From NCBI GenBank assembly GCA_002269645.1, contig NIVC01001263.1, positions 62,001 to 126,000 on the forward strand: a stretch of 64,000 nt of DNA. The letters run 5' to 3'. Below are positions 2,637-64,000 of the stretch, piece by piece. Made by a program: the position numbers and the translations under genes. The notes beneath the pieces are model-generated. The model ran no database searches. It was given only the letters and a program-made list of their open reading frames with translations, and was not told the DNA's origin. The DNA is from Macrostomum lignano (Eukaryota). Within the stretch, counting starts at the first letter, position 1. The number at the start of each line of letters is the position of its first letter.

Positions 2637-3347
2637 TATGTACCCATTTGAACTGCAGATTTCTAAGAAAATAATTATAAAAATAAAAATGTGCAAAAGT
2701 AAAGGATCACAACACTAGTGTCTTTTAATTTTGTAAATGAGATGTATTAAATTAACTAAAACTATTAAACAAATAACTTCAAAAATCTAACTAAATTCCC
2801 TAGTATTAGCAATGAGATATATGATTTTTGAATATGTAAGTATATATTGTTAGAATAGACATTAAATACTTGGTTTAATATACAATCTTGTGAAAATGTT
2901 AGTATACTAGAAATAAAAAATCTTTTTGACTAATATAAATCAAACAACATTTTTTCTTTGAAATTAAGTCATTTATATAATACTAGAAACTCAAAACTGC
3001 TACCAGTCAATACATTGATTTATACATGTAATAAAACTAAGAGTTCTGATAACTTATGTACCCAATTTAGGCTCTGCTGTTAATTCAATGGTAATTATAT
3101 AAACTAGCCTAGTTATTTCAAGTGTGCACTAACTAAATGGCATTTTCAATTCCCACCAAAACTTTTAGATCAGAGGCGTGAAAAAGTGCACTATGATAAA
3201 ATTACTGCACGCATTCAGAGCCTCTGCAGCGGCTTGAATGAAGACTATGTTGAGCCAGTAAGTGCCTTCACATTGCCTACTAGTTAGTAGCCAGTAGCAT
3301 GTATGTAATTCAGCACTTGTATCTTGGCTCTGCCTTTCAATGCGCAG

Positions 3348-6300: not shown

Positions 6301-7109
6301 TGCGCAATAGCCTCCTGCTGGCCCCGATGCCTACCGCCTCCACAGCTCAAATTCTCGGCAACAATGAGAGCATTGAGGCCTACACTAGCAATGTGTACAG
6401 CAGGCGGGTTCTGTCCGGCGAATTCCAGGTGGTTAATCCGCATCTGCTGCGCGACCTCACCAGGCTGGGTCTCTGGTCAGACGATCTGAAGACTGCAATC
6501 GTGGCTAACCAGGTGAGTCGTATGCATCAATAATTAGCTATTTAGAGACATCCTGGTTGGCGCATTGGCCTTTGAGCGGCCATTCTGAAATTCGACTCTG
6601 AAAAGGACAATTAGATACGAAGTATTATATGTTCTATGCACATGTTCTATCCCAGCTGACCCATTGTCACTCCGCAGGGCTCCGTCCAGAGCATCGATGG
6701 CATACCGCAGGAGGTGAAGGACCTGTACAAGACGGTGTGGGAGATCCCGCAGAAGCGCATCATGGAAATGGCCGCCGACCGCGGCGCCTACATTGACCAG
6801 AGCCAGAGCCTGAACCTGCACATCGCCCAGCCCAACTTTGCCAAGATCACCAGCATGCACTTCTTCGCCTGGCGCAGCGGCCTGAAGACCGGCATGTACT
6901 ACCTGCGCACCAGGCCGGCCGCCCAGCCAATCCAGTTCACCGTGGACAAGGCCAGGGTTCGGGTCAAGGGCAAGGAGAACGACGCCTCCGAACCGGCTGG
7001 CGACACCAAGCAGGCGGAGGCCGCTATGCAGGAGCTCCGCCTGCAGAACCAGAAGGACATGCTCTGCTCGCTGGAGAACAAGGAGGCCTGTCTGAGCTGC
7101 CAGGGCTGA
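3348..7109 (+). CDS. RRM1: Ribonucleoside-diphosphate reductase large subunit (class Ia R1), 5'-partial
   Basis: Exons 3348-4090, 4704-5210, 5870-6512 and 6678-7109 (GT-AG, phases consistent, 774 aa). Motifs: LSSCFLL, SNLCTEI (catalytic N-C-E), [22 protein letters not shown] and C-terminal CLSC. About 36 N-terminal ATP-cone residues are missing, so exon 1 should lie upstream of the window. Confidence 0.97.
4168..4661. repeat. Intronic minisatellite, ~30-bp units (partly a 61-bp dimer)
   Basis: GGGATCCTCAGAGACGAGATAGTGTGTGCA and related units inside an RRM1 intron. Confidence 0.9.
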
Positions 7110-9772: not shown

Positions 9773-17959
<8,187 letters not shown>

Positions 17960-18202: not shown

Positions 18203-19395
18203 CCTGCCAGTTGTCTGTCAGTGAGTGATGAGGTGACTGCCAGTTGTCTGTCAGTGAGTGATGAGGTGACTGCCAGTTGTCTGTCAGTGAGTGATGGGTG
18301 ACTGCCAGTTGTCTGTCAGTGAGTGATGGGTGACTGCCAGTTGTCTGTCAGTGAGTGATGAGGTGACTGCCAGTTGTCTGTCAGTGAGTGATGAGGTGAC
18401 TGCCAGTTGTCTGTCAGTGAGTGATGAGGTGACTGCCAGTTGTCTGTCAGTGAGTGATGAGGTGACTGCCAGTTGTCTGTCAGTGAGTGATGAGGTGACT
18501 GCCAGTTGTCTGTCAGTGAGTGATGAGGTGACTGCCAGTTGTCTGTCAGTGAGTGATGAGTGACTGCCAGTTGTCTGTCAGTGAGTGATGAGGTGACTGC
18601 CAGTTGTCTGTCAGTGAGTGATGGGTGACTGCCAGTTGTCTGTCAGTGAGTGATGAGGTGACTGCCAGTTGTCTGTCAGTGAGTGATGAGGTGACTGCCA
18701 ATTGTCTGTCAGTGAGTGATGAGGTGACTGCCAGTTGTCTGTCAGTGAGTGATGAGGTGACTGCCAGTTGTCTGTCAGTGAGTGATGAGGTGACTGCCAG
18801 TTGTCTGTCAGTGAGTGATGAGGTGACTGCCAGTTGTCTGTCAGTGAGTGATGAGTGACTGCCAGTTGTCTGTCAGTGAGTGATGAGGTGACTGCCAGTT
18901 GTCTGTCAGTGAGTGATGAGTGACTGCCAGTTGTCTGTCAGTGAGTGATGAGGTGACTGCCAGTTGTCTGTCAGTGAGTGATGAGGCTGCCAGTTGTCTG
19001 TCAGTGAGTGATGAGGTGACTGCCAGTTGTCTGTCAGTGAGTGATGGGTGACTGCCAGTTGTCTGTCAGTGAGTGATGAGGCTGCCAGTTGTCTGTCAGT
19101 GAGTGATGAGGTGACTGCCAGTTGTCTGTCAGTGAGTGATGGGTGACTGCCAGTTGTCTGTCAGTGAGTGATGAGGCTGCCAGTTGTCTGTCAGTGAGTG
19201 ATGAGGTGACTGCCAGTTGTCTGTCAGTGAGTGATGAGGTGACTGCCAGTTGTCTGTCAGTGAGTGATGGGTGACTGCCAGTTGTCAATCAATTAGTGAT
19301 GAGGTGACTGCCAGTTGTCTGTCAGTGAGTGACGAGGTGACTGCCAGTTGTCTGTCAGTGAGTGACGAGGTGACTGTCAGTTGTCAATTAGTGAT
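18203..19395. repeat. 33-bp minisatellite filling the GRAMD4-receptor intergenic space
   Basis: (GTGACTGCCAGTTGTCTGTCAGTGAGTGATGAG)n, about 35 copies. Confidence 0.97.
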
Positions 19396-19697: not shown

Positions 19698-22600
19698 ATG
19701 ACAGGCGCTGTGCTGTTGAACATGGTTGGCATGGTAACCGTGATAGCCGCCGGCTCGGCCGAAGCCATCACTGTGCGCGGCAGCGGGGCGACCTTCCCGC
19801 AGAATGTATACATTGCCGTCTGCGACCGCTACAGTGCGCACCGCAGCGCCTGGGCGGACGTCAGCATCGTCTACTCGGGCGTGGGCAGCGGCACCGGCCG
19901 GCTCAATTTCCAGCGGGGCTACAACAACCAGGCCGACCCCGACTACCAGCTGTTTGCCGGCAGCGACTCCATCATGAAGGACTCGGAGTACAGCAGCTAC
20001 CCGGAGAGCCAGATGTTCCCCACGCTGGCGGGGTGAGCTGCTGGCGGGATCTCCACCTTGTCTCTGCGACTCTGCGAGGGATTGCTAGTTTAGCCTACAA
20101 GCACTGGAGTAGAATGGATTGCTAGTCTAGCCTACATGCACTGGAGTAGAATGGATTGCTAGTCTAGCCTAAATGCACTGGAGTAGAATGGATTGCTAGT
20201 CTAGCCTACATGCACTGGAGTAGAATGGATTGCTAGTCTAGCCTACATGCACTGGAGTAGAATGGATTGCTAGTCTAGCCTACATGCACTGGAGTAGAAT
20301 GGATTGCTAGTCTAGCCTACAAGCACTGGAGTAGAATGGATTGCTAGTCTAGCCTACATGCACTGGAGTAGAATGGATTGCTAGTCTAGCCTAAATGCAC
20401 TGGAGTAGAATGGATTGCTAGTCTAGCCTACATGCACTGGAGTAGAATGGATTGCTAGTCTAGCCTACATGCACTGGAGTAGAATGGATTGCTAGTCTAG
20501 CCTACATGCACTGGAGTAGAATGGATTGCTAGTCTAGCCTACATGCACTGGAGTAGAATGGATTGCTAGTCTAGCCTAAATGCACTGGAGTAGAATGGAT
20601 TGCTAGTCTAGCCTAAATGCACTGGAGTAGAATGGATTGCTAGTCTAGCCTAAATGCACTGTAGTAGAATGGATTGCTAGTCTAGCCTACATGCACTGGA
20701 GTAGAATGGATTGCTAGTCTAGCCTACATGCACTGGAGTAGAATGGATTGCTAGTCTGAGCATTTTGTTGTTGTTAGTCTACAGATCTAACCCATCTATC
20801 GCATAGATTCATTGGAATCTGTGACAAGTTTTTATCTGCAGATATTGTTGAAGATTTCCTTTCTGTCAGTTCTATCCTGCTGCAGGCTCGCGAGTCAGTG
20901 TTTGGTCGGATTGTATAAAAAGTATACAAAACAAACTCATTGTGCCGGTGCAGCCCGTCAGAGCAAGCAATCCACTTTGACTTTTGTGCTGTGGCTGCAA
21001 AAACAAAAGTGGCAGGTCTAAGACCCAAAGCAGGCAAAAGTGCTGCTTTCATGCCGGGATCTGGAAGTAGCAGCGCGGGATTTTAGGCTGCTTTTTAGCT
21101 CGTAAAAGCAACATTGAAGAATGAGAAGGGAGAGGCGGGCTGCTCCATCTCAACCTGAAAACAGGCCACAAGCCATGTTGTTTTTTCTTGAGCATACTTT
21201 TCCGCGGCTGAGCTCTCGGCTCTGCTAGCTTGAGGTGGCGCCTGTCTCTTTTTAGTTCCGTTTGTAGTTGTATTTCAGAAAATTGGATTTGATCCAGAAA
21301 AAGGACTCGTCTCTGGTGGTCCTGAGGCTGGAAATTAATATCTATATAGCGACAGAAAAACGATGAAGGGTGGAGAATATGATTGATAAAGAAAGCAGGA
21401 ACTGGTGACTTTTAGGTCAGATGTGGGTGGGTAGGTAGGTAGGTAGTTAGGTAGGTACGTGGGTAAGTGGATAGGTAGATAGGTGGGTAGGTGCGTGAAT
21501 TGGTGGGTAGGCAGTTAGGTGGGTAGATTGGTGGGTAGGTACTTGGTAGGTTGATCGGTAGGTAGATAGGTAGGTAGGTAGGTAGGTAGGTAGGTAGGTA
21601 GGTAGGTAGGTAGGTAGGTAGGTAGGTAGGTAGGTAGGCACGTAAATAGGTGGGTAGGTAGATGGGTGGGTAGGTGGGTAGGTAGGTTGGTAGGTGGGTA
21701 GGTAGTTAGGTAGGTGGGTAGGTAGTTAGGTAGGTAGGTGGGTAGGTAGTTAGGTAGGTAGGTGGGTAGGTAGGTGGGTAGGCAGGTGGGTAGGTAGTTA
21801 GGTAGGTAGTTAGGTAGGTAGGTGGGTAGGTAGGTGGGTAGGTAGGTGGGTAGGTAGTTAGGTAGGTAGGTGGGTAGGTAGTTAGGTAGGTAGTTAGGTA
21901 GGCAGGTGGGTAGGCAGGTGGGTAGGCAGGTGGGTAGGCAGGTGGGTAGGCAGGTGGGTAGGCAGGTGAATAGGTGGGTAGGCAGGTGGGTAGGCAGGTG
22001 GGTAGGCAGGTGGGTAGGCAGGTGGGTAGGCAGGTGGGTAGGCAGGTGGGTAGGCAGGTGGGTAGGCAGGTGGGTAGGCAGGTGGGTAGGCAGGTGGGTA
22101 GGCAGGTGGGTAGGCAGGTAGGCATACAGGCAGTTCAGTAATTGAATAGCCAGGCAAAGCAAGCCAGTTGGACTCGAGAACTCCAACAAAGATGAAAGCC
22201 CTCAGCTCATCAAACAGCTCGCATCGCTCACTCTAATTCAGAGTTAAGACTAGGAAAGATTTGTCACCCGACTGGCTCACAATGATTTCCAGCTTGGCAG
22301 AATCGCGAATCAGACTTTGACAGAAAGCAGAGCTGACTTTTTAACTCTTAGCGAAACAGGAAACTTGTGTATGTCGAGATCCGCCCATGCAGCAGTTCCC
22401 CACGTCAGCGGCAGCTCTGAGGACTCTGTTAATTGAAACTTAGCCGCTGATCCGCTGCTACAAAAAGTTTGTTTTTTTCCAGCCCACCTTGCTGAGTCTT
22501 TTTTTCTCCACTTCATTGTTTTGCCCTCCGCTCCGCCGCCATGGGGCTGCTGGCTCATGACGGCGCCTCCCGCCCTCCGCTCCGCCGCCATGGGGCTGCT

Positions 22601-25600
22601 GGCTCATGACGGCGCCTCCCGCCCTCCGCTCCGCCGCCATGGGGCTGCTGGCTCATGACGGCGCCTCCCGTCCTCCGCTCCGCCGCCATGGGGCTGCTGG
22701 CTCATGACGGCGCCTCCCGCCCTCCGCTCCGCCGCCATGGGGCTGCTGGCTCATGACGGCGCCTCCCGTCCTCCGCTCCGCCGCCATGGGGCTGCTGGCT
22801 CATGACGGCGCCTCCCGCCCTCCGCTCCGCCGCCATGGGGCTGCTGGCTCATGACGGCGCCTCCCGCCCTCCGCTCCGCCGCCATGGGGCTGCTGGCTCA
22901 TGACGGCGCATCCCGTCCTCCGCTCCGCCGCCATGGGGCTGCTGGCTCATGACGGCGCCTCCCGCCCTCCGCTCCGCCGCCATGGGGCTGCTGGCTCATG
23001 ACGGCGCCTCCCGTCCTCCGCTCCGCCGCCATGGGGCTGCTGGCTCATGACGGCGCCTCCCGCCCTCCGCTCCGCCCCCAGCTTTGGCACCGTAAGCTCT
23101 GTTCAAATAGCCAATTGAGCTGAAACCCTGAGCCGCTATTAGGCTGGGCCGTATGCCTGAGCTCTGGCCTGATGGCCACCCTCTGCCGCGCCAGTCTCTG
23201 CAACAACTCATTAATTAATGGGCCGTGAAGGGTTTAATTCCGCCAGCAGTAACCGGCCTGCCCTCGCCTCACAGTAGCCTCACAATAAAAATTGCCATCC
23301 AGCATCGGCAGGACAAGTGTAGAGACCAGCGATCGCCGCTATTTAAAGTACGAGACCAGTCAGAGCGATAGCCTGCCTTAGTGTAGAAGATCCATGCTAA
23401 TATTTACAGATGCATGAATTGCTCAGATATGTCTTTTGCGAGTGTGTGCTTTCATTGTGTACTTTGGCTGAATTATGCACGAGTTTACAGTTTGCTGAGA
23501 TCTCAGCTTATCCGTGCCTACAGACTCTCGAGAAACTCCCGTGACTACTGCAATGCACGGGACTGGTTGCAAGGACCGACCGCTAGGTCTGCTTTTGCAT
23601 TCACAAGCCGCTCTGGAGACAGACATGGCGTGATGCAGGCATGGCGTGATACAGACATGGCGTGATACAGGCATGGCGTGATGCAGGCATGGCGTGATGC
23701 AGGCATGGTGTGATGCAGGCATGGTGTGATACAGATATGGTGTGACACAGATATGGTGTGATTCAGGCTTGAGTAGCCCTGGAGTGTGTCAGGGGGCTTG
23801 AGTAGCCCTGGAGCGTGTCAGGGGGGGCTTGAGTAGCCCTGGAGTGTGTCAGGGGGGCTTGAGTAGCCCTGGAGCGTGTCAGGGGGCTTGAATAGTACTG
23901 GAGTGTGTCGGGGGACTCTGGGGGAGTGAGGCTTACTCGAACATAGCCAGTTGAGAGGCCTCGAGGTGCTGAGAAGCTAAATGAAAGCCAACGAACTCCC
24001 ACAGCGCCGTGGCGGTGGCCTATCACCCGCCGTCCTTCGGTGCAACACGGCTGCGCCTGACCCGCCAGACTCTGGTCGACATCTACATGGGGAAAACTTC
24101 GCACTGGGACAGCCCGGGCATTGTTAACGCGAACCCGAACTCGAGTCTGCCCCACAACCCCATCCGGCCCATGGCTCGCATGGACAAGTCGGGCTCCACC
24201 GCAGTCTTCACCCAAGCTCTGAGCTCCTTCTCAGCCGAGTGGAAGGCCAAGTACGGCGAGTTCGAGCGCGAGCTCAACAAAGTCACCTGGAGACACCCGG
24301 ACTGGAACAATTCAGTTGTTGAGTTCTTCGCCCAGGGTACCGATGGGCTCACCGCCCTACTCAGCAGCCTGCGAAACTCCATCGCCTACATATCGGCCTC
24401 GGATCTCAGACTGAACGATGAGAGCCTCGTGAGCCTCGCGCTGATTGAGAACGCCAACGGAAGCTTCGTGGACGCCTCGCAACCGGCCTCCGTGCAGGCG
24501 GCCATGGACTTCTACGCTAACACAATGGACTCCCGGCTAACTGGACACCTCATTGACGCCCAGAACCCGGACGCCTACCCAATCGCCACCTACACCTACT
24601 TCATCATCAAGATGAACATGACTGCGAAGTGAGTCTTATGGGACGGTTTCTCTTGTTTTATATAAACACTATTGTTTCCTGCAGCCTAAGTTTGTTTGTC
24701 GATTAGAGCTAAAGGCAGCAAAGCTTAAAGAGGATCTGGGTTCACACAGCTACAGGGGTTTTTCCTAGAAAATACTAGCAGGAAGTCTGTTTCCTAGATA
24801 ACAGCAAGGACTATTGTACATGTAACGAGTAGAATAAGGACGATTGTACATGTAACGAGTAGAATAAGGACGATTGTACATGTAACGAGTAGAATAAGGA
24901 CGATTGTACATGTAACGAGTAGAATAAGGACGATTGTACATGTAACGAGTAGAATAAGGACTATTGTACATGTAACGAGTAGAATAAGGACTATTGTACA
25001 TGTAACGAGTAGAATAAGGACGATTGTACATGTAACGAGTAGAACAAGGACGATTGTACAGGCAATGAGTAGAATAAGGACTATTGTACAGTCAATGAGT
25101 AGAACAAGGACTACTGGACCGGCAATGAGAGTAGAACAAGGACTACTGGACCGGCAATGAGAGTAGAACAAGGACTACTGGACCGGCAATGAGAGTAGAA
25201 CAAGGACTACTGGACCAGCAATGAGAGTAGAACAAGGACTACTGGACCGGCAATGAGAGTAGAACAAGGACTACTGGACCGGCAATGAGAGTAGAACAAG
25301 GACTACTGGACCGGCAATGAGAGTAGAACAAGGACTACTGGACCGGCAATGAGAGTAGAACAAGGACTACTGGACCGGCAATGAGAGTAGAACAAGGACT
25401 ACTGGACCGGCAATGAGAGTAGAATCATTGAGAAGTCTCATTCAGCCCCAGAGGATAAGCAGACGCAATGGGGATCGTATGTGAACTGAAGCCTCTTTAT
25501 TGGACATGATGCTGTGTGCTTATGAAGGCCAGTCCCTCTCAATCGTTGCATATCCACTGTGGGGTTATGTAGCTGTCGACGGCTGCAGCATTTGCACGGG

Positions 25601-28600
25601 GCGATAACCTCTTAAAACTGAACCTTAAAACTGACTAACCAAACAGACCTCACTCAGCAGCCCTTTGTGCGAGTGAGGTCTGATAACAATGGAACAGCAG
25701 TCTCTGCTGATTCTTTCATTCTAATGTCGTGGATTGGTTTTATTGGACAGCCCGACGCTTAATTTTCATAATTGCTGTGCTTCCAGGCTAAAAGCAATAA
25801 AAGATGCACAAATTATTTAAATTGATTGCAGGCCAAGGCTTTTCATGTTTCGCATATAGAAAGGACACAAGAGCGACATGCGTGTAGATGGGGCAAAGAG
25901 AGGACTGTAGAGTGGACAAGAAAGGACTGTAGAGTGGACAAGAGAGGACTGTCGAGTGGACAAGAGAGGACTGTAGAGTGGACAAGAGAGGACTGTCGAG
26001 AGGACAAGAGAGGACTGTCGAGAGGACAAGAGAGGACTGTAGAGTGGACAAGAGAGGACTGTCTTGAGGACAAGAGAGGACTGTAGAGAGGACAAGAGAG
26101 GACTGTAGACTGGACAAGAGAGGACTGTAGAGTGGACAAGAGAGGACTGTCGAGAGGACAAGAGAGGACTGTAGAGTGGACAAGAGAGGACTGTCGAGAG
26201 GACAAGAGAGGACTGTAGAGTGGACAATAGAGGACTGTCGAGAGGACAAGAAAGGACTGTAGAGTGGACAATAGAGGACTGTCGAGAGGACAAGAAAGGA
26301 CTGTAGAGTGGACAATAGAGGACTGTCGAGAGGACAAGAAAGGACTGTAGAGTGGACAAGAGAGGACTGTAGAGTGGACAAGAGAGGACTGTAGAGTGGA
26401 CTGTAGAGTGGACAAGAGAGGACTGTAGAGTGGACTGTAGAGTGGACAAGAGAGGACTGTAGAGTGGACAAGAGAGAACTATAGAGTGGACTGTAGAGTA
26501 GACAAGAGAGGACTGTAGAGTAGACAAGAGGGGACTGTAGAGTGGACAAGAGAGGACTGGTTAATGTTAGAGGGCTATAAAACAAAAATTCAGACGGCCG
26601 AAAGGTACTAAATAGATAGGGCACTCAGCACTAGCCAGACTCCGCCCGAACTCCAGGTGCGATGAAGCCACCGAGTTCTATGGCTTCCTGAACTGGTTCT
26701 ACACGGACCCGGAGCCGGCCAGCATTATCCGCGCCAACAATTTCGTGCCGCTCAGCAACGCTGTCCGCCAGAAGGTCCGGACGCAGGTGCTCGACAAGGC
26801 CGCTTGCGGTGGGCGGCTCCTGCGCGAGCTCTGGCTGGAGAAGCGGCGCCGCGAGCAGACGGAAGCGGAGAGCCGGAACTCGTCCTGGATGGCGCCGACG
26901 CTCGCCTCCGTTGGCGTCGGGCTGCTGGTGGCCGGCGGCCTCGGGGCGTACATTGCCAGGCAGAGCTACGTGCAGTGGAAGCTGCTCAACCAGGTGAGCC
27001 AATTCTGAAGCTTCAGCAACACACTGTATTTTTACATTCTTATTCCTCAGGTTGTAGAGAAAGCCTCCGGATCCTTGAATTTTTCGTGCCTGCTCGTGTG
27101 CCGCGTCTCCATCCAGGTTTTCTTGACTGGCACTGAGAGTTCATCCGTCAGTCTTTAGACAAGCCTTCAGGCAGCAAAGCAGCTCACAGCTCAACACCAA
27201 GGGAGCAGGAGAGACCAAGGAGATTTGGGCTGGGCTCTTTACGCAGAGTGAAAGTAGTTTGGATAACATATGAGCCGCTGGTTAGGTGGGGCACGCCACA
27301 AAGGCAGTTGATACTTACTTCTGCATCAAAAAGTCGCGCAGGTGCCAGACAGCAACTCTCCCCCTCCTCAAAACTTGGCCCGCGCAGGACCTGTGGCTGG
27401 TGCCGATCGAGGAGATCATGTTCTTCGCTCCGCGCAGCCGCGGCCGCAACCGATCAATGCGCAGCTTCCGCATGGACGATTCCGACACGATCTCCGTCGG
27501 CACGCAGATGACGGAGGATGAAGCGGAGAGCGAGGAGGATTACGACGCGGACACGGTGCTGCAGTGGCCGGGCAAGTTCCGGGAGGCCAGCGTCGGCGTG
27601 CGACTGCTGCAGACGCAGCGATCGCAAGAGAGGCTCGACATCTCCACTAAGAAGCTGCTGCAGTGGATGATGGACCGCGTCCACCACAACAACGTGGCAG
27701 CGTTCCACGGCCTGACCCAGGTCGAGCGGGACTTCTTTGTTGTGTCAGAGTACTGCGAGCGCGGCCCGCTCAGCAAGGTTGTGCACAACCCCAAGCTGGA
27801 CCTGGCGCCCGCGGTCAAAGGCTCCATAGTGATGGACATCTGCCAGGCTGTCAGCTACCTGCACAGCCAGGGCATCGTGCACGGCATGCTGCGGACCAGC
27901 GCCTGCCTCATGGACAGCAAGTGGACGGTGAAGCTAGCGGACTGGGAGTACCTCATGTACTATTCAACCACCACCCGGGCCGTCAAAGACGCCCGGCCGG
28001 CCATCCAGTACGTCCGCGACGCCATACTGGGCGAGTATCCCAGCGAGCAGCAGGTCCTGGACTTCGACATCTACGTTGCACCCGAGATCCTCCGCTCCGA
28101 GCTGCAGTGGCCGCCGGACCAGAGCTCCGACATTTACTCCTGCGCTGTGATCTTCTACGAGATCTTCACCCGGAGCATTCCCTTCGCCAGCTACAGGGAG
28201 GACCTGAGCAACGCCCGGGACCTGCTCACGGCCATTGTGAAGAACTCGCTGCGGCCTGACCAGCTTCAGGACATCCCCATCACCTTCCGCCAGGTGCTGG
28301 AAACCTCCTGGAGCGACGATCCCAGGGTCCGGCCCAGCGCCGAGAACCTCACCAAGCTGGTCAAGAAGTGCTTCCCCAGGCGCAAGAACATGATGCAGAG
28401 CATGTTTGACAGCCTGGAGTCCGAGCACCTGCTGCTGGAGAATGAGATGCTGGCATTAAACTCGGCCATGGAGGAGCAGCGAGACTCCTACCAGGCCATG
28501 ATCCGCTCCAACCTGCCCGAGTTCTACGCCAGCCGATTGCTCAACGACCAGCCGTTCCAGCCAGAGTACAAGCGGCTGGCTGGGGTGCTCTTCGTGCGCC

Positions 28601-31295
28601 TGGATGGCCTGGCCTGCCTCAGCGACGTCAACCGGCCCTTTGAGGTGAACGCCGTCTCCAACGCCCACTACCACGTATTCAACAGCATCGCCGCCAGCTA
28701 CAGGGACGTCCACATGCGCCACGCGTTCGGCGACCTCTTCCTGTTCCTATGCGGCCTGCGGCGAAAGTCCTCTCGACGCAGCGTCCGCGATCTGCTGCGC
28801 CTGGCTGAGCACCTAATCCGCCTAGTGCGATGCGGCGGAGTCCATGTCAATGACGACGCCGACTGCGGCAATGGCGGCGGTGTAGCGTCACCGCCGATGG
28901 CCGCCTGCGCAGGGCTGCACTGCGGCCCAGTGTCCATCGGCGTCATCACTTCCGGCGTCCCGGCGCTCTTCGCTGGCGGCGGCGCGCTCCATGTGGCCCT
29001 GCAGCTGGCGCTGAGCGCCGAGAAGCACCAGGTGCACGCGTCCGAGACGGTGCGGCGGGCCCTCGCGGGCGAAACTGAGGAGAACGAAGAGCCGGAGACT
29101 GCAGCGCCATCAGAGCCAGAGCAGCCAACCGACGAGGCTGCGAAGTTGGAGGCGGCGATGGAGGCAGCTGAGGGGGCGGCGCAGGAAATGGGCAACGGAG
29201 CCGACGGGGAAGCCGCCGAGAGTGCCACGGCGGATCAGGCAGAAGCTCAGCCCCCGATTCCACAGCCGGAGCCAAAGTCCGCCACCGCAGCGGCGAAGGT
29301 GGCGGCGGCAGCGGCGGCAACCGCTGCGGCGGCTGCGAATGCGGCAGCCACGGCGGCGGCAACGGCGGCAGCGGCAGCTTCGGGCACCTCGCCACCGCCG
29401 GGCTTGGAGGCGGCCGGCGAAAAACGCAGCGACAGGAAGAAAAAGAAAAAGAAAAAGGAGCAGCAAAAGTTCCACTTTGAGAAGCGACTCTGCCCGGCTT
29501 CGGTGAGTGCAAATTCGAGGTCGCTGAGGCATTGGTGGCCGGTGCTGACACCTGCTATGTTTCTAATGTGGCTTGAAGCAGCAGGCATCCGCCTGAGTTT
29601 TTATTAATAGCTCTACCGAGTCCACTTCAAAGCCAGCTCCCCCCATCAATCAGGATAATGACGGAACTGTCTTCAGAGCAAAATGCTCAACTTCCAAAGA
29701 GCAGAATTGTTCTACCCAGTGATTAATTAGGCTTGCAGAATGCGCAATTGACGGTTGGGCAGGTGAGGCCAGCTCAGAGTTGCACCTGTGAGTAGGCTGG
29801 TAATTTCCCTACTTTACTTGGGTAAATCCTATTTAGGGAAAAGATGGTCATCTTTAATATTGTCGAAAATTTCTGAGCAATGCTTCCAGTAAGACTATAA
29901 TCAGAGGGCTACCTTATCCTTCAAATAAGCATCTATCGATTTCAGAATCCCTCAATGCTCCCAGGCGGGCTCGCCTTTTGTTTCACTGCACTGCGGCCCG
30001 TCCCCAGCCCTCACTTGAGTTGGTGGCGGGCGCTGCGGTGTCAATATTTGAGTCCGGCAGGCCCGGCAGCAGCTCCTGATCGATTGCCGGAGCAGAATGG
30101 CGGGAGGGGCGGCCGGCTGTAATCGAATTTCACGTCAGCGAGTCTCAGAGATATGTAATTAGACCTGCAAATTAATTTGGGGTAATTTTGGCCCCGACAG
30201 ATGCAGCACAGGCTGGGGTTGGCATGGCTGGCCAGACTCCGGACCATAAAATTCAGTCCCTAGTGGGGCGCCCACTCCATTATGAAAAAAATGCGCATGG
30301 CAGTGCGATGGGCAGGGAGAGAGAGAGAGAGAGAGAAAGAGGGGGAGAGAGAGAGGACTTTTATCCGAACAATGGCGTGGTGGAGAAGCTGGGCTTAGCG
30401 AGGCGAATTCCAGAAACGTGAAATTCGCGAGAAAAAGTCGGATTCGCAATCGTCATCAATTAAGAAAAGATTAGATAAGAAGACAGACAACAAGAATTAT
30501 AAAACAGGTGGCAAATGGCGTGACGTCACAGTGGGGACACCGCAGGCTCACCGAGCTGCCCCCCCTCCCCACCCACAGGACGGCAAATTTGTTACCACCT
30601 ACTGCATCTCGAGCGTCAGCGATGAGGCTGAGGATTCCATGCTCCTGGAGGCTGGGGACGCGCTGATCCCGTCTGACGTCGAAGCGGATGGCGACGCGGA
30701 TGCCGACGCGGATGCGGACGCGGGCTCCGACGAGGAGGCGAACCCGTCCTGGGGGGCGCAGCGCCTCCGCGGCACGGCCCGCTCGCCGCCGCCCGCCCCC
30801 GCCCTGGGCAGCCGCCGCTATCGCCTGCACGCCGCTGCCAGAGACTCCGACGAATCGGCGGCGGCGGCGGCGGCGGCCTCGCCAGATCGCGTCACTGTCA
30901 CAGTCGTCGACGAGGTCCGGCCGCCGACGCCGCCGCTGCCATCAACGCGGCCGGCCGCCACGGAGGCGCAGAAGCTGCTGCCGCGCAGCCTGCAGAAAGC
31001 GCGGCTGACCGGCAGCGGCTCCGAGGCGGCGCCGTTTCGCATCTTTATGTCCAGCGAGTCTCTGGAGATGTCGGCGCTGGGACCGGCGCAGCGCAGCAAC
31101 GGCACCGCGGCGCGGAAGTCGATCCTCAGCCGCAGCGCCGGCACCAACGGGTCCGCCAACGCCAAGAAGAAGGTGCTGTCATTCTGCGACGATACGGCGA
31201 TCGCCGTGGTCATCGAGGAGGGCGCGACGAATCGAGCATTTATTGAGGACTCGGTGGAGGACGATGCCGAGGGCAGCCTCGTCTGCGAGCTCTGA
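19698..31295 (+). CDS. Single-pass receptor: signal peptide, PstS-type phosphate-binding domain, TM helix, kinase-homology domain, degenerate guanylate cyclase domain (receptor-GC-like, ~1375 aa)
   Basis: Exons 19698-20032, 24005-24628, 26657-26993, 27388-29502 and 30579-31295 (GT-AG, in phase, 4128 nt). Ectodomain motifs [46 protein letters not shown] and [12 protein letters not shown] align with E. coli PstS. TM is [27 protein letters not shown] motifs are [21 protein letters not shown] and YVAPE. Cyclase-like motifs are [31 protein letters not shown] and QVHASE. AATAAA at 31477. Confidence 0.9.
20082..20757. repeat. 37-bp minisatellite in receptor intron 1
   Basis: (GCTAGTCTAGCCTACATGCACTGGAGTAGAATGGATT)n, about 18 copies. 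Confidence 0.95.
21420..22125. repeat. G-rich (GGTA)n/(GGTGGGTAGGCA)n satellite in receptor intron 1
   Basis: Direct inspection; source of the PTYL/PAYP pseudo-ORFs. Confidence 0.95.
22525..23080. repeat. 49-bp GC/CpG-rich minisatellite in receptor intron 1
   Basis: (CCGCCATGGGGCTGCTGGCTCATGACGGCGCCTCCCGCCCTCCGCTCCG)n, about 11 copies. Confidence 0.95.
23620..23912. repeat. Two adjacent short arrays (16-bp and ~28-30-bp units)
   Basis: GCATGGCGTGATGCAG units followed by GGGGCTTGAGTAGCCCTGGAGTGTGTCA units. Confidence 0.85.
24800..25425. repeat. 30-bp array grading into a 32-bp variant (receptor intron 2)
   Basis: AGGACGATTGTACATGTAACGAGTAGAATA units change to AGGACTACTGGACCGGCAATGAGAGTAGAACA units. 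Confidence 0.9.
25880..26560. repeat. 22-bp minisatellite (receptor intron 2)
   Basis: (GAGAGGACTGTAGAGTGGACAA)n. Confidence 0.92.
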
Positions 31296-31606
31296 GGCGC
31301 GTCGGCACCGCCAAGGCCGCCTCTCTAATGCTATTTCTGTAACTTTTGCAATTCATTATATTTTCCTGTACTCAAGACTGCAGACTGGTGGCAGTTCTAC
31401 GCTCGTATTTATTTGCTGACTCAGAACCGCGAACGTAACCTGTTTGCTATTTTACTTTGAAAGTAGAAGTGTTTTTAATAAATATTTTTAATGAGCCTCG
31501 CAACTGGATCCCATTCTAGCGGCAGCTGTCCAACAGGATTCAGCGACTGCTGCCAGTCTTACCCGGTTAAGCCTGAGAAAAATTACAAAATTTATTAGCC
31601 TTTGCC

Positions 31607-31607
<1 letters not shown>

Positions 31608-31645
<38 letters not shown>

Positions 31646-31648
31646 TAG

Positions 31649-31687
<39 letters not shown>

Positions 31688-31688
31688 G

Positions 31689-31743
<55 letters not shown>

Positions 31744-31744
31744 G

Positions 31745-31817
<73 letters not shown>

Positions 31818-31834
31818 TAGTGTGTGTCTGTCTT

Positions 31835-31885
<51 letters not shown>

Positions 31886-31892
31886 TAGTGTG

Positions 31893-31967
<75 letters not shown>

Positions 31968-31970
31968 TTT

Positions 31971-32033
<63 letters not shown>

Positions 32034-32040
32034 ATCTGTC
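31608..32040. repeat. (TCTG)n microsatellite
   Basis: Direct inspection. Confidence 0.97.
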
Positions 32041-32142
32041 TTCATCCGCATACAGAGCGAAGGAAACGCAAATGAGCCAAAGAGGAGGCAGAGACGGAAG
32101 TTTTTCAACTCCCCAGCCTGGGCTAAGCTGCTCCAAGACGCT

Positions 32143-32803: not shown

Positions 32804-32896
32804 CTAAACGCCGCCTGCTCTCCCCGGACTCGGAGGACGCCCCTGGTGGTCCTGAACGCAACAGGCCGCTTCTGGATGGCTCACCCAGCATCCGGT

Positions 32897-33331
32897 TGAG
32901 CAAACCAACAGTACTGAGGCTTGCTTCACTGCGGGACCGGCGGCAAACCAACAGTACTGGGGCTTGCTTCACTGCGGGACCGGCGGCAAACCAACTGTAC
33001 TGGGGCTTGCTTCACTGCGGGACCGGCGGCAAACCAACTGTACTGGGGCTTGCTTCACTGCGGGACCGGCGGCAAACCAACTGTACTGGGGCTTGCTTCA
33101 CTGCGGGACCGGCGGCAAACCAACAGTACTGGGGCTTGCTTCACTGCGGGACCGGCGGCAAACCAACAGTACTGGGGCTTGCTTCACTGCGGGACCGGCG
33201 GCAAACCAACTGTACTGGGGCTTGCTTCACTGCGGGACCGGCGGCAAACCAACTGTACTGGGGCTTGCTTCACTGCGGGACCGGCGGCAAACCAACTGTA
33301 CTGGGGCTTGCTTCACTGCGGGACCGGCGGC
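32897..33331. repeat. 43-bp minisatellite, ~10 copies
   Basis: (CAAACCAACTGTACTGGGGCTTGCTTCACTGCGGGACCGGCGG)n. Confidence 0.95.
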
Positions 33332-33669
33332 GCGCAATGAATTCGACCCTCTAAAACAATGATAAAACCCTCTTAGACCAATTTTATTCTTCTCAGCGCT
33401 TGAGTTTATTCCTGCGCTGACATCCTGACTGAGAACTTTCAGGCTAGCAGATCACTGTAGACCAGAGCGCCTCAGGACAAAGGAAACGCAGTAATCATCA
33501 TGCACTCATAAATTTTCGGCTTACAACCAACTGACTGCTTGATACTGATGCCCACCAACAGCTGGACCAGCCACTGCAACCCGAGACTGCGGAGATGATC
33601 AGGGGATCAGGGGGATCTGTCTCGATTTATATAGCAGAAAATTCATATCAAGGAAGCTGTTCTCTTTAT

Positions 33670-34215: not shown

Positions 34216-34484
34216 TGAGAGAAAGAATGAAACATTAACAGGGGATCGGAGTTTTCAGCACACTTTCTCATCCCCAACCACTCCATTGCAAACTTTGTCA
34301 CCTTCGCTATTGAACAAGTCCAAAATAAAACAAAATCAAACTAAGGAAAGAAGTTAAGGCAGAAGAAAAGGATTAAAAAACTGGGGACTGACAATCCCGG
34401 TTGACAACCATCTTCTCCGAGCCATCCCGCTGGTCCTTCCTTTTCATCCATCTTCGGTCTAGCTTGATGCGTCGTGTTATTTCA

Positions 34485-35103
34485 CCCATTGATTCTCCCC
34501 ATTGATTCTCCCCATTGATTCTCCCATTGATTCTCCCCATTGATTCTCCCATTGATTCTCCCCATTGCTTCTCCCCATTGATTCTCCCCATTGATTCTCC
34601 CCATTGATTCTCCCCATTGATTCTCCCCATTGATTCTCCCCATTGATTCTCCCCATTGATTCTCCCCATTGATTCTCCCCATTGATTCTCCCCATTGATT
34701 CTCCCCATTGCTTCTCCCCATTGATTCTCCCCATTGATTCTCCCCATTGATTCTCCCCATTGATTCTCCCCATTGATTCTCCCCATTGATTCTCCCCATT
34801 GATTCTCCCCATTGATTCTCCCCATTGATTCTCCCCATTGCTTCTCCCCATTGATTCTCCCCATTGATTCTCCCCATTGATTCTCCCCATTGATTCTCCC
34901 CATTGATTCTCCCCATTGATTCTCCCCATTGATTCTCCCATTGATTCTCCCCATTGATTCTCCCCATTGATTCTCCCCATTGATTCTCCCCATTGATTCT
35001 CCCCATTGATTCTCCCCATTGATTCTCCCCATTGATTATCCCCATTGATTCTCCCCATTGATTATCCCCATTGATTCTCCCCATTGATTCTCCCCATTGA
35101 TTC
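34485..35103. repeat. 13-bp minisatellite
   Basis: (CCCCATTGATTCT)n. Confidence 0.97.
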
Positions 35104-36530
35104 TCAATCGCACTTGCAAATATCAACTTTTATGGAAGCTTGAAAATTTCCCGCCGAGGTTCGTCCTGCATTGCTTTTTTGCTGCAGCGAATCCAGCCAT
35201 GTGGCAGATTTTGCAATGCTTGGTACATCTTTTAAAGAGATTTCTAGGACAAAGCAGCCTGGCATATACATGAATTAGTAGCTCACCGATGTACTCCTAC
35301 ATGAATATAGCAATGAAAACATACAAGAAAAATAAGCATTTGCTATGCAGTTACTATCGAAACATTTGATCGGGTAAATCTCTTTATTGACTCACCAAGC
35401 ATTGGGCCGGAGGCAATGCAGACAAAATTTGCGTGGCAGAAATGCGCTGCAGGAAGAAAGCACTGCGGGCAAACCTCGGCGGGAAAAGCTTGGCGGGTAA
35501 TTCGTCTGCGGGGAATTCTCGTGGACCCGACTTTTATGCTCCCGACTTCGGAAAAAGCACTTTTTTAATACACTAATTATACTGACTGGTTAAAAGCCTC
35601 CGGGACAAGATAGAACAGGTTCATGTATGTACATCGCTCATTCAACCAAATCTAAGTTCATACATAAAAGGCAAATATTCGTTCAATTAATTTTACTAAC
35701 TCAATACGTCGTGACCTCCCCCCCTTTTTTCTCTCACTATCTACGCACTCCACTCCGTTGACTGACATGTGTCGAACAACAACTGTTGGGCAGCAACAAC
35801 AGCAGCAAGCAGCTGATAAGTTTTTGCCAGTTCGTATTTAATTACGCAACATTAATGCTCTGCAGGTAAAATTTCGACTTAGCAATAAAATCTCACGGCC
35901 TGTTGGGGTTGGTGGGCCACTTTTTTCAATGGTTGCCATTAGCAACGGTGGGTGGGAGAGCCAAGCTGTCATGTGAGGCTCCGAGTGCCCCGGAGTGCGC
36001 ACGTGGTCAGATCGGGCGGGCGCTGCCAGGTCGATCCGAAACTGTAGCGAGAAATCGAAATTGCTACAGTCAGTCGATAAAGCAACTCTCACTGCCTGTA
36101 AACACAATAAACAGAGGAGGGGGGCTCTCAGATTATGCGGAAAATGCTGGCACGGTGTCGCCATAAAACTTGGACTTGCTCGGTGCAGCTTGCGCTGGGG
36201 TGACGCAGGCCAGGGGAGGCAGCGGGGCACGGGGAGGGCGGGTCACCATTAACTTATTAAGAGCCTTGGCGTGCGGCCTAAGCTTGGCTGTTTATCTTAT
36301 CAGCGGGGCCTCCCCATCCAATCCGTCCTCCAACTGGAGCCCCCAGCCCACAGAGCCGCGGAGCCACCTTTCCGTGCCCTCCTCGAGCCGCAGCCAGAGA
36401 TAAATCGGTACAGATACGGCGGGTTAGGCCAGGACTCGAGGAGTTTTGCAGCAAGCAAGCCGAGCAAACTCAACTCTGCCTGTGTTGTCGATCCGCACAA
36501 AGAGCAGAACTCTAAGCACCTAAGCGAGCC

Positions 36531-37657
36531 ATGCAGCATCCCTGCCGACTGCTCATTGCGCTATTCTTGGCCACAGCGGCTCCGCTGATCGCCAAATCCC
36601 AGGAAGACTCGTCCGACGGCATCGGCTGCGGCTACAGCTGGCAGCAGTCGATCTGCAAGCTCGCGCCAGCCGATTTCAGCTTCAATGACGGCTGCAACAC
36701 GGTGACCTGCGACGGTAGCGGCTCGCTGGTCTCCACGCTGATGGCCTGCCCGCCGGCCGCCACAGCCGAGGAGCGACAGCGCTGCCAGACGATCCGTGAG
36801 AACATACAGCTGCGACTGGACGATGCGGACAGGGTAACCTGCCCGGCGCTGTCCATGCAGGCCGTCTGCGCCACCGCCGGTGCCGGCTTCACTTACAGCG
36901 ACGGCTGCAACCCGGTGGTCTGCGACGGCAACGGCAGCGGCACGTCCACGTTGATGTTCTGCCCGTCGCCGGGAGACCCTACCCAGATCGCCAGGTGCGA
37001 GCGGCGCATGGAGCGCCTGGTCGAACGGATGGAGCCGCGGACCTGCTCGGGATCAACAAGACGGAGGTCTGCCGGATGGAGGGCATCGGGTACCGATTCA
37101 GCGACGGCTGCAACACGATCGAGTGCGGAGAGAGCGGCATGTGGACCAGCACGCTCATGGGCTGCCCGCCAGCCAGTTCCGAGAGCGCCCTCTGCCAGTG
37201 GGTGGTCAGCAAAGCCCGCCGAACTGCTCCTGAGGGCAACCGGGACCTCGACTGTCCGGAGCTGGCCATGTCGCGAATCTGCACGAATGAGATGAACGGC
37301 TTTCGCTACAACGACGGATGCAACGAAGTGTACTGCTCCTCGCCGGGCCGTGGTGTCAGCACCACCCGCCTCTGTCGGGTGGGCAGCGAGGCGGAGGCCG
37401 CTCGCAGGTGCAGCGACGCCAAGACGGCCATGGAGGCGAAGCGCCGAGAGTCAAAGCGGCGCACGAGCTGCCTGACGGCTGCGGACGTCTGCAAGCAGCC
37501 CGGGGAGCGGAAATCGTTCTTCGACGGCTGCAACTATTGCTTCTGCATGGGCGTCAATCGGGCAGGCTGCACCCGGCGGGCTTGTCAGCCCTACTTCAGC
37601 ACTGAGGAGGAGTTCAGGGCAGAGTGCGTGCGGCGCAAGGCCGGCATCATCAACTAG
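36531..37657 (+). CDS. Secreted pacifastin-like Cys-rich repeat protein A (5 repeats, ~375 aa), interrupted by a 1-nt frameshift at about 37049-37051
   Basis: Signal peptide MQHPCRLLIALFLATAAPLIAKS. Four (F/Y)x(F/Y)xDGCNxVxC...STxxxC repeats are followed by a canonical pacifastin motif CKQPGERKSFFDGCNYCFCMGVNRAGCTRRAC. The track splits it into ORFs 36531-37295 and 36995-37657. Intronless. Confidence 0.75.
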
Positions 37658-38787: not shown

Positions 38788-39756
38788 ATGCAGCTTCTCT
38801 TCCTCATCACGGTGGGCCTGCTGTGCACTGCCGTTTCGAGTAGTCAGGCCGAGAAGGATGAGCCGGCCCTGCGCTGTCCGGACCTCGATCCCGGACTCGT
38901 CTGCAACGCCACGGAGTCCGGCTTCAGCTACAACGATGGCTGCAACACCGTCACCTGCAACGATGGCGGTCTGGCGAGCACCACCCTCCTGGCCTGCCCG
39001 GAGCCCAGCAGCCGGGGCGAGCGGAACCTCTGCGAGAGCCTCTCCCGCGCCGTCTGGAGCCGCCTCGGCCCCTTCACTTGCTACAACATCGATGCCGACT
39101 CCGTCTGTACCCGCCGCGGCGCCGGCTTCGCCTTCAGCGACGGCTGCAACCGGGTCCGCTGTCTGGCGGCCGGCGGCCACGCCAGGACCCGCATGGAATG
39201 CCCGGTGACCGACCCGACCGGCCCGTACTGCCGCTTCGTGGCATTGGCGTTGGAGTCGGAGGGCTCGGAAAAGCAGCAGTCGGAGGAGCCGCGAGCCGGC
39301 GCGCTCGAGGAGGACGAGTTCGAGTGCCCGGCGCTGCGGCACAGCCGCATCTGCGAGGAGTTCCTGCCGGGCTTCCAGTACAACGACGGCTGTCGGAACG
39401 TCACCTGCGTGTCGGACGGCCTGGCCCGCGTGGCCGACAGCCGCGAGTGCCCGCAGCCGGAGCCCGACAACGAGGCCGCCGCTCTCTACTGCCGGGAGGC
39501 GCAGCGCCGCTTCCAGGAGAAGAAGGACCGGTCGCGCTTCTACACGACCTGCCTGGACGCCGACAGCCTGTGCAGGGGCCGGCGCACCGCCGAACTGGCC
39601 TTCTTCGACGGCTGCAACCGCTGCTTCTGCCTGCCGGACCGCAGCGCCGCCTGCACCCGGGCTGCCTGCCCGCCGATGTTCATCACCCCGGAGGAGTTCA
39701 CCGCCCACTGCCGCCGCGTCGGAGCGGGCGTGCTGTCGCACAGACGGCGGAAGTAG
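38788..39756 (+). CDS. Secreted pacifastin-like Cys-rich repeat protein B (4 repeats, 322 aa)
   Basis: Intact intronless ORF with signal peptide MQLLFLITVGLLCTAVSSSQA, three degenerate repeats and a terminal canonical motif CRGRRTAELAFFDGCNRCFCLPDRSAACTRAAC. AATAAA at 39927. Paralogue of protein A. Confidence 0.85.
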   Translation: MQLLFLITVGLLCTAVSSSQAEKDEPALRCPDLDPGLVCNATESGFSYNDGCNTVTCNDGGLASTTLLACPEPSSRGERNLCESLSRAVWSRLGPFTCYNIDADSVCTRRGAGFAFSDGCNRVRCLAAGGHARTRMECPVTDPTGPYCRFVALALESEGSEKQQSEEPRAGALEEDEFECPALRHSRICEEFLPGFQYNDGCRNVTCVSDGLARVADSRECPQPEPDNEAAALYCREAQRRFQEKKDRSRFYTTCLDADSLCRGRRTAELAFFDGCNRCFCLPDRSAACTRAACPPMFITPEEFTAHCRRVGAGVLSHRRRK

Positions 39757-62669: not shown

Positions 62670-62761
62670 GTATGCTTTGATACTTACAGAAACTATTGGG
62701 TCAGGGGAGGCGGCAAAGTGCTCGAGATATGCACCATTGAGTATGGGGAGAGCCGGGTAAC

Positions 62762-63495: not shown

Positions 63496-64000
63496 CATTT
63501 TGTATGGTGGAATTGTGCGAGTAGTGCACAGTGCTAAAAGCCTAAAAGCCCTCCCGCCTTCATCCCGGTCAGCACCTGGTTGCCTACGCAGCCGCTCACG
63601 CGCTGGTAGCTTTGAGCATCGACCGAGTGGACGCCATCTCGAATCCGCTGAGAGCGTCAACATCCAAGAGAGGTGAGGAAATTCCATAACCAATTTGACA
63701 GCAGCTTTCTGTAGTAAAATGCTTGCTGAGATAAAGCAAGTACGAGCGTAGATACCCTGCTTCTAGGTCGTACACGCATGTAAAGTGTGTTGATGGAAGA
63801 CTAAAAAAGCAGGGCAAGGTGGCTGAGGGGCCGAACCGGCTCAACAGCAGCGCATGGCAAGATAATTAAGTCAGGAGTCTAGAATAGAAACTCTTACACC
63901 CGTTACACCTGTTACACCTGTTTATCTACGATCATATTGATAATGACGATAATGACGCGATGACTAAACGGCTGCAAATTTCAGGCTTTCAAACCGGCTG

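Follow-up and report, generated by a model that had tools for sequence, protein, structure and literature searches.

The 64,000-nucleotide stretch of Macrostomum lignano DNA analysed here (contig NIVC01001263.1, positions 62,001 to 126,000; hereafter the window) carries on its + strand, at positions 19698-31295, one intact gene for a type I single-pass membrane receptor. Five coding blocks, identified from the listing of open reading frames (ORFs) and by direct reading of the sequence, join in frame into a spliced coding sequence (CDS) of 4128 nt that encodes 1375 amino acids (aa); the four introns are all of the GT...AG type and lie in phases 2, 2, 0 and 0. The encoded protein has the chassis of a receptor guanylyl cyclase (RGC), with a kinase-homology domain (KHD), a signalling helix and a cyclase-homology domain (CHD), and an ectodomain of the type of the bacterial phosphate-binding protein PstS. 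A first-pass annotation made from the DNA letters had proposed an animal gene with these five exons, four junctions and order of domains; the ORFs, the GT-AG borders, the Pfam matches and the AlphaFold2 (AF2) models bear it out, and the animal is a free-living flatworm.

Exon 1 (19698-20032) contains the start codon, a signal peptide recognized by its hydrophobicity (aa 1-23, 19698-19766) and the first part of the PstS domain, including the codons of the phosphate-site residues T32/F33 (19791-19796), S64 (19887-19889) and D90 (19965-19967); it ends in phase 2 inside Gly112. Intron 1 (20033-24004, 3972 bp) consists to 56% of minisatellites, as determined with Tandem Repeats Finder, with repeat units of 37, 12, 49, 16/48 and 29 bp. 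The central PstS domain is encoded by exon 2 (24005-24628), which includes the phosphate loop R-M-D-K-S-G-S (R170-S176, 24177-24197) and again ends in phase 2. Minisatellites with units of 30/32 and 22/44 bp make up 63% of intron 2 (24629-26656, 2028 bp). Because introns 1 and 2 are so largely minisatellite, the gene is invisible in the ORF track alone, as the first-pass annotation had maintained.

The end of the PstS domain and the transmembrane helix are held by a single exon, in one ORF: exon 3 (26657-26993) encodes the C-terminal PstS part with Cys321 and Cys370, an extracellular stalk helix and the transmembrane helix (about 26895-26960). It is followed by the repeat-free intron 3 (26994-27387, 394 bp). 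Exon 4 (27388-29502) runs from the juxtamembrane region to the CHD: it starts with a W-x-x-P-I-E-E-I motif and a disordered acidic insert and continues with the KHD (aa 490-765, 27559-28386), the signalling helix (aa 767-807, 28390-28512), the CHD core (aa 825-993, 28564-29070), a low-complexity insertion and the first half of the last CHD hairpin. After intron 4 (29503-30578, 1076 bp, phase 0), exon 5 (30579-31295) encodes the remnant of that last beta-hairpin ([12 protein letters not shown], 30579-30617) and a low-complexity tail of about 225 aa, up to the TGA stop codon at 31293-31295. An AATAAA read from the sequence at 31477-31482, about 180 nt 3' of the stop, is a candidate polyadenylation signal. 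The two disordered insertions of exon 4 are lineage-specific and absent from the mollusc homologues: the juxtamembrane one (27388-27560, aa 449-488) is acidic, and the one inside the CHD (29071-29460, aa 994-1123) is Ala/Glu-rich and ends in a run of Lys.

The splice junctions are well supported by homology. A 353-aa M. lignano fragment in UniProt, P0005 ('PBP_domain domain-containing protein'), is 99-100% identical to residues 189-541 of the model, from which it differs at 4 of 353 residues, and uses junctions 2 and 3 likewise. Junctions 1-3 fall inside unbroken alignments to full-length mollusc homologues. The genes of Haliotis asinina and Owenia fusiformis were recovered and their exact exon structures rebuilt. 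Intron 1 interrupts, in phase 2, the Gly codon that follows the sequence FPTLA, and both the codon and the phase are common to the window, Haliotis and Owenia (F/L-P-T/V-L-A). In Haliotis and Owenia a phase-0 intron lies directly 5' of the G-K-G...T-[YF]-W-L hairpin that closes the cyclase domain; intron 4 of the flatworm gene is located, in phase 0, ten residues ahead of the T-[YF]-[WC]-[LI] end of the hairpin, which is the residue and the phase found in Owenia when the comparison is anchored on the hairpin.

No other of the 338 tail windows completed the family CHD profile as well as the peptide that bridges exons 4 and 5 ([14 protein letters not shown] from exon 4 followed by [12 protein letters not shown] from exon 5), which gained 11.9 bits (median 0; 95th percentile 3.3; maximum from 200 shuffles 9.0). 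Exon 5 has the codon usage of a coding region (GC at third codon positions, GC3, 0.85; in-frame score +0.42, versus about -0.5 out of frame), and the alternative of reading through past exon 4 to 29607 showed codon usage of the non-coding kind. A CHD truncated at aa 993 was also considered and was rejected, the terminal hairpin having been found to span the exon 4/5 junction.

The topology follows from two features of the sequence: the two most hydrophobic 19-mers are aa 1-19, in the signal peptide, and aa 402-420, in the transmembrane segment, for which AF2 predicts a helix at 398-431. Of the N-glycosylation sequons, five lie in the ectodomain (373 aa) and four in the intracellular part (944 residues).

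The ectodomain is of the PstS type by profile, by homology to solved structures and by predicted fold. The spliced ectodomain matched PF12849 (PBP_like_2) with 77.1 bits (cutoff 27) over profile positions 3-266/267, crossing junctions 1-3, while exons 1 and 2 taken separately gave 17.8 and 45.2 bits. PBP_like_2 was not listed in a Pfam scan of the whole 1375-aa protein, although the ectodomain alone gave 77 bits; this is attributed to filtering or bias caused by the low-complexity tail, and not to absence of the domain. PBP_like_2 was the only domain detected by Pfam in the ectodomain, and no ANF_receptor (LIVBP-like) domain was found there. TIGR00975, the NCBIfam equivalog model for PstS, matched over 311 of 315 profile positions with 192.2 bits (E 1e-56), just under its equivalog cutoff of 205 bits. 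Among PDB sequences, phmmer placed Yersinia PstS (2Z22, E 2e-26) at the top, with E. coli PstS (1IXH/2ABH) at E 4e-25; identity to characterised PstS proteins is about 25-35%.

The predicted phosphate site is intact. HMMER alignment to 1IXH and 2Z22 showed the following residues to be identical to those of E. coli PstS: T10 (T32 in the flatworm protein), F11 (F33), S38 (S64), D56 (D90), R135 (R170), D137 (D172), S139 (S174) and G140 (G175). T141 is changed to S176, and G138 is replaced by Lys. This alignment matches the one that the first-pass annotation had made by hand, its T141-to-Ser change included. An AF2 model of the ectodomain, built from a 39-sequence alignment, had a mean pLDDT of 92.7, and when it was compared with the PDB by Foldseek the top 16 matches, among them 5WNN, 1PBP and 2ABH, were all phosphate-binding proteins of the PstS/PhoX type (TM-score 0.73-0.86, E ~4e-29). 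The nearest non-animal relatives are metagenomic PstS proteins with 33-35% identity, and the best bacterial one, P0006, sits in a phoR-phoB-pstS-pstC-pstA-pstB-phoU operon. The C-terminal Cys pair, Cys321/Cys370 here, is common to the bacterial relatives and the animal proteins. By inspection of the window's ORFs of at least 130 aa, with no dedicated search, no transporter genes were noticed.

The flatworm gene is not a one-off fusion. An exhaustive profile search of 1.84 billion representatives yielded about 100 clusters (50% identity) in which the match extends from the PstS domain into the KHD-CHD region or all the way across it. Word-indexed searches gave four matches with the full protein and two with the intracellular half, and the first of these searches missed the 99%-identical P0005. 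The members found include molluscs (the bivalves Argopecten, Mercenaria and Mya, the gastropods Haliotis, Bulinus and Nucella, and the chiton Liolophura), the nemertean Tubulanus, the annelids Owenia and Helobdella, the priapulid Priapulus and the nematode Trichinella. The auto-annotated invertebrate homologues that the first-pass annotation had thought might exist are many, and their names are generic: 'atrial natriuretic peptide (ANP) receptor 2-like' for Haliotis, 'gcy-29-like' for Liolophura, 'retinal guanylyl cyclase 2-like' for Argopecten and Tubulanus, 'Guanylate cyclase' for Owenia (A0A8J1UIS0) and 'gcy-1-like' for Priapulus. These proteins are already public, with precomputed Pfam hits under misleading names, and the family is apparently undescribed: no description of a PstS-type ectodomain on animal receptor cyclases was found in the full-text literature, subscription-only papers not being covered.

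The protostome homologues resemble the flatworm protein from end to end, with 27-31% identity over 96-100% of the query, and share its phosphate site and Cys pair; the alignments to Haliotis and Liolophura, at 96-100% query coverage, are collinear from the PstS domain through the transmembrane helix, KHD and signalling helix to the CHD. The flatworm protein is the most divergent of those examined and differs from them in its extra introns 2 and 3, its 130-aa CHD insertion and its 225-aa tail. In an alignment of 48 sequences, 40 family rows reach across the phosphate loop; 36 of them have the Arg corresponding to R135, and most keep the other loop residues. The Cys pair is present in almost all members.

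Two further observations concern database entries. In the ENA, Logan and JGI sets, many matches (P0125-P0168, 860-900 aa) begin at profile position 110-114, the site of intron 1; they are therefore probably the large exon 2 of eukaryotic PstS-type RGC genes, called as stand-alone prokaryotic ORFs and kept as such in metagenome protein collections. One of them, P0145, bears the JGI name 'class 3 adenylate cyclase/ABC-type phosphate transport system substrate-binding protein'. In P0201, from Trichinella pseudospiralis ('Guanylate cyclase 2G', 1605 aa), the canonical cyclase residues are present and the phosphate loop is lost (Y-x-G-x-S-R-A), a pattern of decay opposite to that of the flatworm gene; at its C-terminus it carries a long Cys-rich extension, which points to a fused gene model.

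One alternative reading is an artefact: bacterial contamination, a mis-assembly, or the mis-joining of two neighbours, one secreted and PstS-like, the other an orphan RGC-like gene. The ectodomain is indeed as close to bacterial PstS (33-35% identity) as to its animal homologues, and the junctions have been read from sequence and homology. Spliceosomal introns, however, cut the PstS domain itself, and one of them matches the gastropod and annelid genes in position and phase; the end of the PstS domain and the transmembrane helix share the ORF of exon 3; the same order of domains recurs, collinearly, in dozens of animal proteins; and codon usage matches that of the neighbouring ribonucleotide reductase gene. 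Contamination and gene mis-joining were rejected on these grounds (shared introns, continuity of exon 3, collinear homologues, codon usage), and we regard an artefact of any of these kinds as scarcely credible.

The ectodomain might instead bind a ligand different from orthophosphate (arsenate, phosphite, a phosphonate or a phosphorylated molecule, for example), or it might serve only as a dimerisation or structural module. Venus-flytrap domains have often been re-tuned once fused to receptors, the identity to characterised PstS proteins is low, T141 and G138 are changed to Ser and Lys, and the Trichinella member has lost the site altogether. Against this, the eight hydrogen-bonding positions and the D137-R135 pair are kept, and most family rows that span these positions conserve them, which indicates selection on the same anion pocket. 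Structural work on PstS has established that an Asp at the D56 position rejects sulfate, and this Asp is kept in the flatworm protein. A ligand other than orthophosphate, or none, is thus unlikely, if still worth keeping in mind.

The intracellular region is collinear with NPR1 across the KHD, the coiled coil and the CHD (E 4.8e-27), and NPR1 is its best PDB match. Exon 4 gave 90.7 bits with PK_Tyr_Ser-Thr and 26.5 bits with Guanylate_cyc in Pfam. In the full-length AF2 model the ectodomain, the transmembrane helix, the KHD, a 40-residue helix at 767-807 and the CHD were predicted with confidence, and only the acidic juxtamembrane insert (449-488) and one loop were of low confidence; the helix at 767-807 aligns to the linker of NPR1. 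The motifs of the KHD (HGML for HRD, DWE for DFG, Arg for the Lys of VAIK) identify it, as far as sequence can, as a pseudokinase of the RGC type.

The RGC chassis proposed in the first-pass annotation is thereby upheld in its collinearity to NPR1; its cyclase domain is catalytically degenerate in the flatworm copy. When aligned to NPR1 and to the canonical Owenia protein, the seven key positions of the CHD read R-H-D-A-F-H-Q in place of D-E-D-R-C-N-R: the first metal Asp is changed to Arg, Glu to His, Arg to Ala, Cys to Phe, the transition-state Asn to His and the transition-state Arg to Gln, and the second Asp alone is retained. The domain is still homologous, scoring 98-114 bits with the family CHD profile.

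It has to be asked whether the flatworm protein could nevertheless be an active guanylyl (or adenylyl) cyclase regulated by phosphate, a homodimer in which cGMP production is switched by the ligand. The RGC architecture, the retention of all catalytic residues in some members, the confidently predicted CHD fold and the terminal hairpin that is still encoded would agree with it. Six of the seven catalytic and specificity residues are replaced, however, the insertion of about 130 aa, of low complexity, splits the CHD core from the terminal hairpin, and the Guanylate_cyc score of 26.5 bits compares with about 220 bits in Owenia and Priapulus. Since six of seven catalytic residues are lost, synthesis of cGMP by the flatworm copy is judged unlikely, and an active, phosphate-switched cyclase very improbable.

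Loss of catalytic residues is frequent in the family. Among 45 tabulated sequences of the PstS type, 10 had the full D-E-D-R-C-N-R set, those of Owenia, Priapulus and Trichinella among them, and the rest were variously degenerate; Owenia, Priapulus and eight other sampled members retain a canonical cyclase, whereas the flatworm copy does not. In a neighbour-joining (NJ) tree of the intracellular region, PstS-type proteins and canonical RGCs were separated in 59 of 60 bootstraps. This refers to the unrooted split; midpoint rooting was dropped as unreliable because the degenerate CHDs lie on long branches. The DWE-type motif K[IVLM]xxW occurred in 43 of 46 PstS-type sequences and in none of 36 canonical RGCs. 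The split and the motif that tracks it imply that ectodomain and signalling module have a common evolutionary history within one subfamily, of which the flatworm protein bears the signatures: DWE for DFG, Cys321/Cys370 and the juxtamembrane motif W-x-[IV]-P-I-E. These findings identify the flatworm gene as a divergent, cyclase-dead member of a wide protostome family.

A dead cyclase domain could also mean that the gene itself is dying, a decaying paralogue and pseudogene in the making, without receptor function, left by a family expansion in a recently duplicated genome. The degenerate CHD, the long low-complexity insertions and the very long branch fit such a history, as does the existence of near-identical M. 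lignano duplicates (P0005, with 4 of 353 residues different). Yet a CDS of 4.1 kb in five exons contains no frameshift or stop, all splice sites are canonical, codon bias is strong, in exon 5 as well, and the protein has kept its phosphate site and Cys pair outside the cell and its KHD motifs and signalling helix inside. We consider decay towards a pseudogene improbable.

The reading that we prefer, with a probability of roughly 60%, is that the gene encodes a phosphate-binding receptor of a distinct RGC subfamily, in which a PstS domain replaces the ANF-receptor domain and signalling is most likely non-catalytic. It builds on the observed gene structure, architecture, homology, residue conservation and predicted fold. 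Extracellular orthophosphate would be enclosed between the two lobes of the PstS domain through the hydrogen-bonding residues of bacterial PstS, and Asp90, the equivalent of E. coli D56, would favour protonated phosphate or arsenate over sulfate. Closure of the lobes would be relayed through the stalk and the transmembrane helix to the pseudokinase, the signalling helix and the CHD, the route known from natriuretic-peptide receptors. Where the cyclase is canonical, e.g. in Owenia and Priapulus, the output would be cGMP. In the flatworm copy, where the CHD fold is kept, the protein may act as a non-catalytic regulatory or heterodimer partner of a competent cyclase or, alternatively, as a scaffold, through its pseudokinase and long tail. 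PstS proteins bind phosphate with sub-micromolar affinity, which suggests that low environmental phosphate, in sea water or sediment, might be sensed and not the millimolar phosphate of body fluid; this point is speculative.

Several points weigh against the preferred reading. The pseudokinase and the CHD are both predicted to be non-catalytic, so that an output cannot be demonstrated from them. In class III cyclases both subunits contribute to each active site, one supplying the metal-binding Asp residues and the other the Asn, Arg and specificity residues; by this geometry a fully dead subunit would silence its partner rather than complement it; a heterodimer of dead and active subunits would lack a complete active site, and its effect would therefore be inhibitory or allosteric. 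No catalytically competent M. lignano paralogue was found in the word-indexed searches with the full protein and the intracellular half. Phosphate binding is predicted from sequence and fold, and the splice junctions from homology. The TIGR00975 match falls short of the equivalog cutoff, and the flatworm protein sits on a long branch, no other full-length member being more than 31% identical to it.

PstS-like ectodomains also occur on receptors outside the animals. Euglena and Entosiphon have proteins with such an ectodomain, and the Fabomonas protein P0231 combines two PstS domains with a kinase and a cyclase. P0245 is encoded by an intronless gene (L003, 1001-5857) on the 1.098-Mb record MG807320.1, and consists of two PstS domains, a kinase, a cyclase and a second kinase. 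The size of the record and its gene structure indicate a giant virus, probably a moumouvirus. The first-pass annotation had pointed to PstS-kinase-cyclase architectures in Acanthamoeba and mimivirus, and P0245 bears this out for an amoeba giant virus. Kinase-flanked nucleotidyl cyclases have been described by Clarke et al. 2013 (PMC4053784), who reported 67 Acanthamoeba cyclases as well as those of amoeba giant viruses; the architecture of P0245 fits that type, and its PBP_like_2 ectodomains are shown here.

The cyclases of Acanthamoeba and giant viruses and the Fabomonas protein resemble the flatworm protein in having an extracellular receptor domain, one transmembrane helix, a kinase and a cyclase. 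P0245 and P0231 have PBP_like_2 ectodomains with two tandem PstS-like domains, versus one in the flatworm protein. In the Acanthamoeba and giant-virus type a second kinase follows the cyclase, whereas the flatworm protein has one kinase-like domain and nothing after the CHD; by the defining criterion of the kinase-flanked cyclases it falls outside that type, and P0245 has two kinase domains. The kinases of these proteins score as typical ones, with 446 bits on PK_Tyr_Ser-Thr in P0245 versus 91 bits in the flatworm protein. A rough NJ tree that combined ectodomains from animals, from protists and viruses and from bacteria recovered animal monophyly in 57% of bootstraps and no stable sister group, and the protist and viral ectodomains did not group with the animal ones; with such support neither a bacterial nor an ancient eukaryotic origin of the ectodomain is favoured. 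A protein of another build, P0146 (2386 aa), was seen in the ichthyosporean Chromosphaera perkinsii: four PstS domains in tandem are followed by ephrin-receptor-like repeats and a TRP-channel-like region. Chromosphaera is closely related to animals, and P0146 may represent a separate type of membrane protein for sensing phosphate.

Among known systems, the animal RGCs (NPR1/GC-A, GC-C, the retinal guanylyl cyclases and the GCY chemoreceptors of C. elegans) share with the flatworm protein the type I single-pass topology, the KHD with its motif HGxL(K/R)S..C..D, the signalling helix and the CHD. They differ from it in their ectodomain, which is ANF_receptor and not PstS/PBP_like_2, and in their catalytic residues, which the flatworm protein has lost; DWE for DFG and Arg for the VAIK Lys, both signatures of the PstS-type subfamily, set it further apart from canonical RGCs. 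Bacterial PstS (E. coli 1IXH/2ABH, Yersinia 2Z22) is alike in fold (TM-score 0.75-0.86) and phosphate-contact residues, and the flatworm domain matches the TIGR00975 profile over nearly its whole length, though just under the equivalog cutoff; unlike bacterial PstS, the flatworm domain is split by introns, tethered to a transmembrane helix and signalling module, and without an ABC transporter partner. DING proteins, including the 'human phosphate-binding protein', are phosphate binders of the PstS superfamily reported from eukaryotic samples, but they are far more distant (E 8e-9 versus 2e-26; TM-score ~0.65), soluble and without a receptor module. The Venus kinase receptors of protostomes carry a Venus-flytrap ectodomain of bacterial type on a single-pass receptor. 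Their design principle is the same; their ectodomain belongs to a different periplasmic-binding class, for amino acids, and their output is an active tyrosine kinase. They are mentioned in passing in PMC12837073.

Other genes were recognized in the window. A multi-exon gene for the large subunit of ribonucleotide reductase lies upstream on the + strand (3324-7109), with ATP-cone, Ribonuc_red_lgN and Ribonuc_red_lgC domains over at least four ORF blocks. A remnant of a Mariner/Tc1-like transposase occupies two ORFs on the - strand (1420-2453), with a Mos1-type helix-turn-helix (2031-2453) and a DDE-like C-terminal part (1420-1821). Downstream, two neighbouring genes on the + strand (36531-37657 and 38788-39756) encode secreted Cys-rich repeat proteins with pacifastin-type inhibitor motifs and a repeated 'DGCN.V.C' unit. 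On the - strand, a RIG-I-like receptor helicase gene (41839-47583) contains the RIG-I C-terminal regulatory domain (41839-42378), Helicase_C (43394-43837) and ResIII/DEAD (47077-47583); its introns also contain minisatellites. Very dense mini- and microsatellite arrays occur throughout the window, between and inside genes, and give rise to many long spurious ORFs on both strands; examples are 10800-12490, 19000-19385, 31607-32041, 32896-33362, 34373-35126, 44182-45175, 48866-49567, 51310-52682, 60725-61646 and 62430-63693.

For the family as a whole we put forward, more tentatively than for the flatworm gene and at somewhat less than even odds, that the RGCs with a PstS ectodomain are dedicated orthophosphate receptors throughout the protostomes, whose canonical members produce cGMP and whose degenerate paralogues are modulators or heterodimer partners. 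Within the family the CHD has decayed repeatedly to a pseudo-enzyme while the sensor domain was preserved, and labels likening the members to natriuretic-peptide receptors and retinal guanylyl cyclases hide the likely ligand. There is no settled account of how animal cells perceive inorganic phosphate outside them; the candidates proposed in mammals (PiT transporters, CaSR, FGFR1) are indirect or disputed. Here a textbook phosphate-binding domain stands on a well-understood chassis, with the anion pocket kept in most of the flatworm, mollusc, annelid, nemertean and priapulid members sampled, and the members with an intact cyclase make a conversion of 'phosphate in, cGMP out' directly testable. 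If the proposal is true, these would be the first animal receptors to use a true phosphate-binding protein as their ligand-binding domain; the canonical members would turn external or body-fluid phosphate directly into cGMP, with likely roles in environmental phosphate chemosensation or in systemic phosphate homeostasis.

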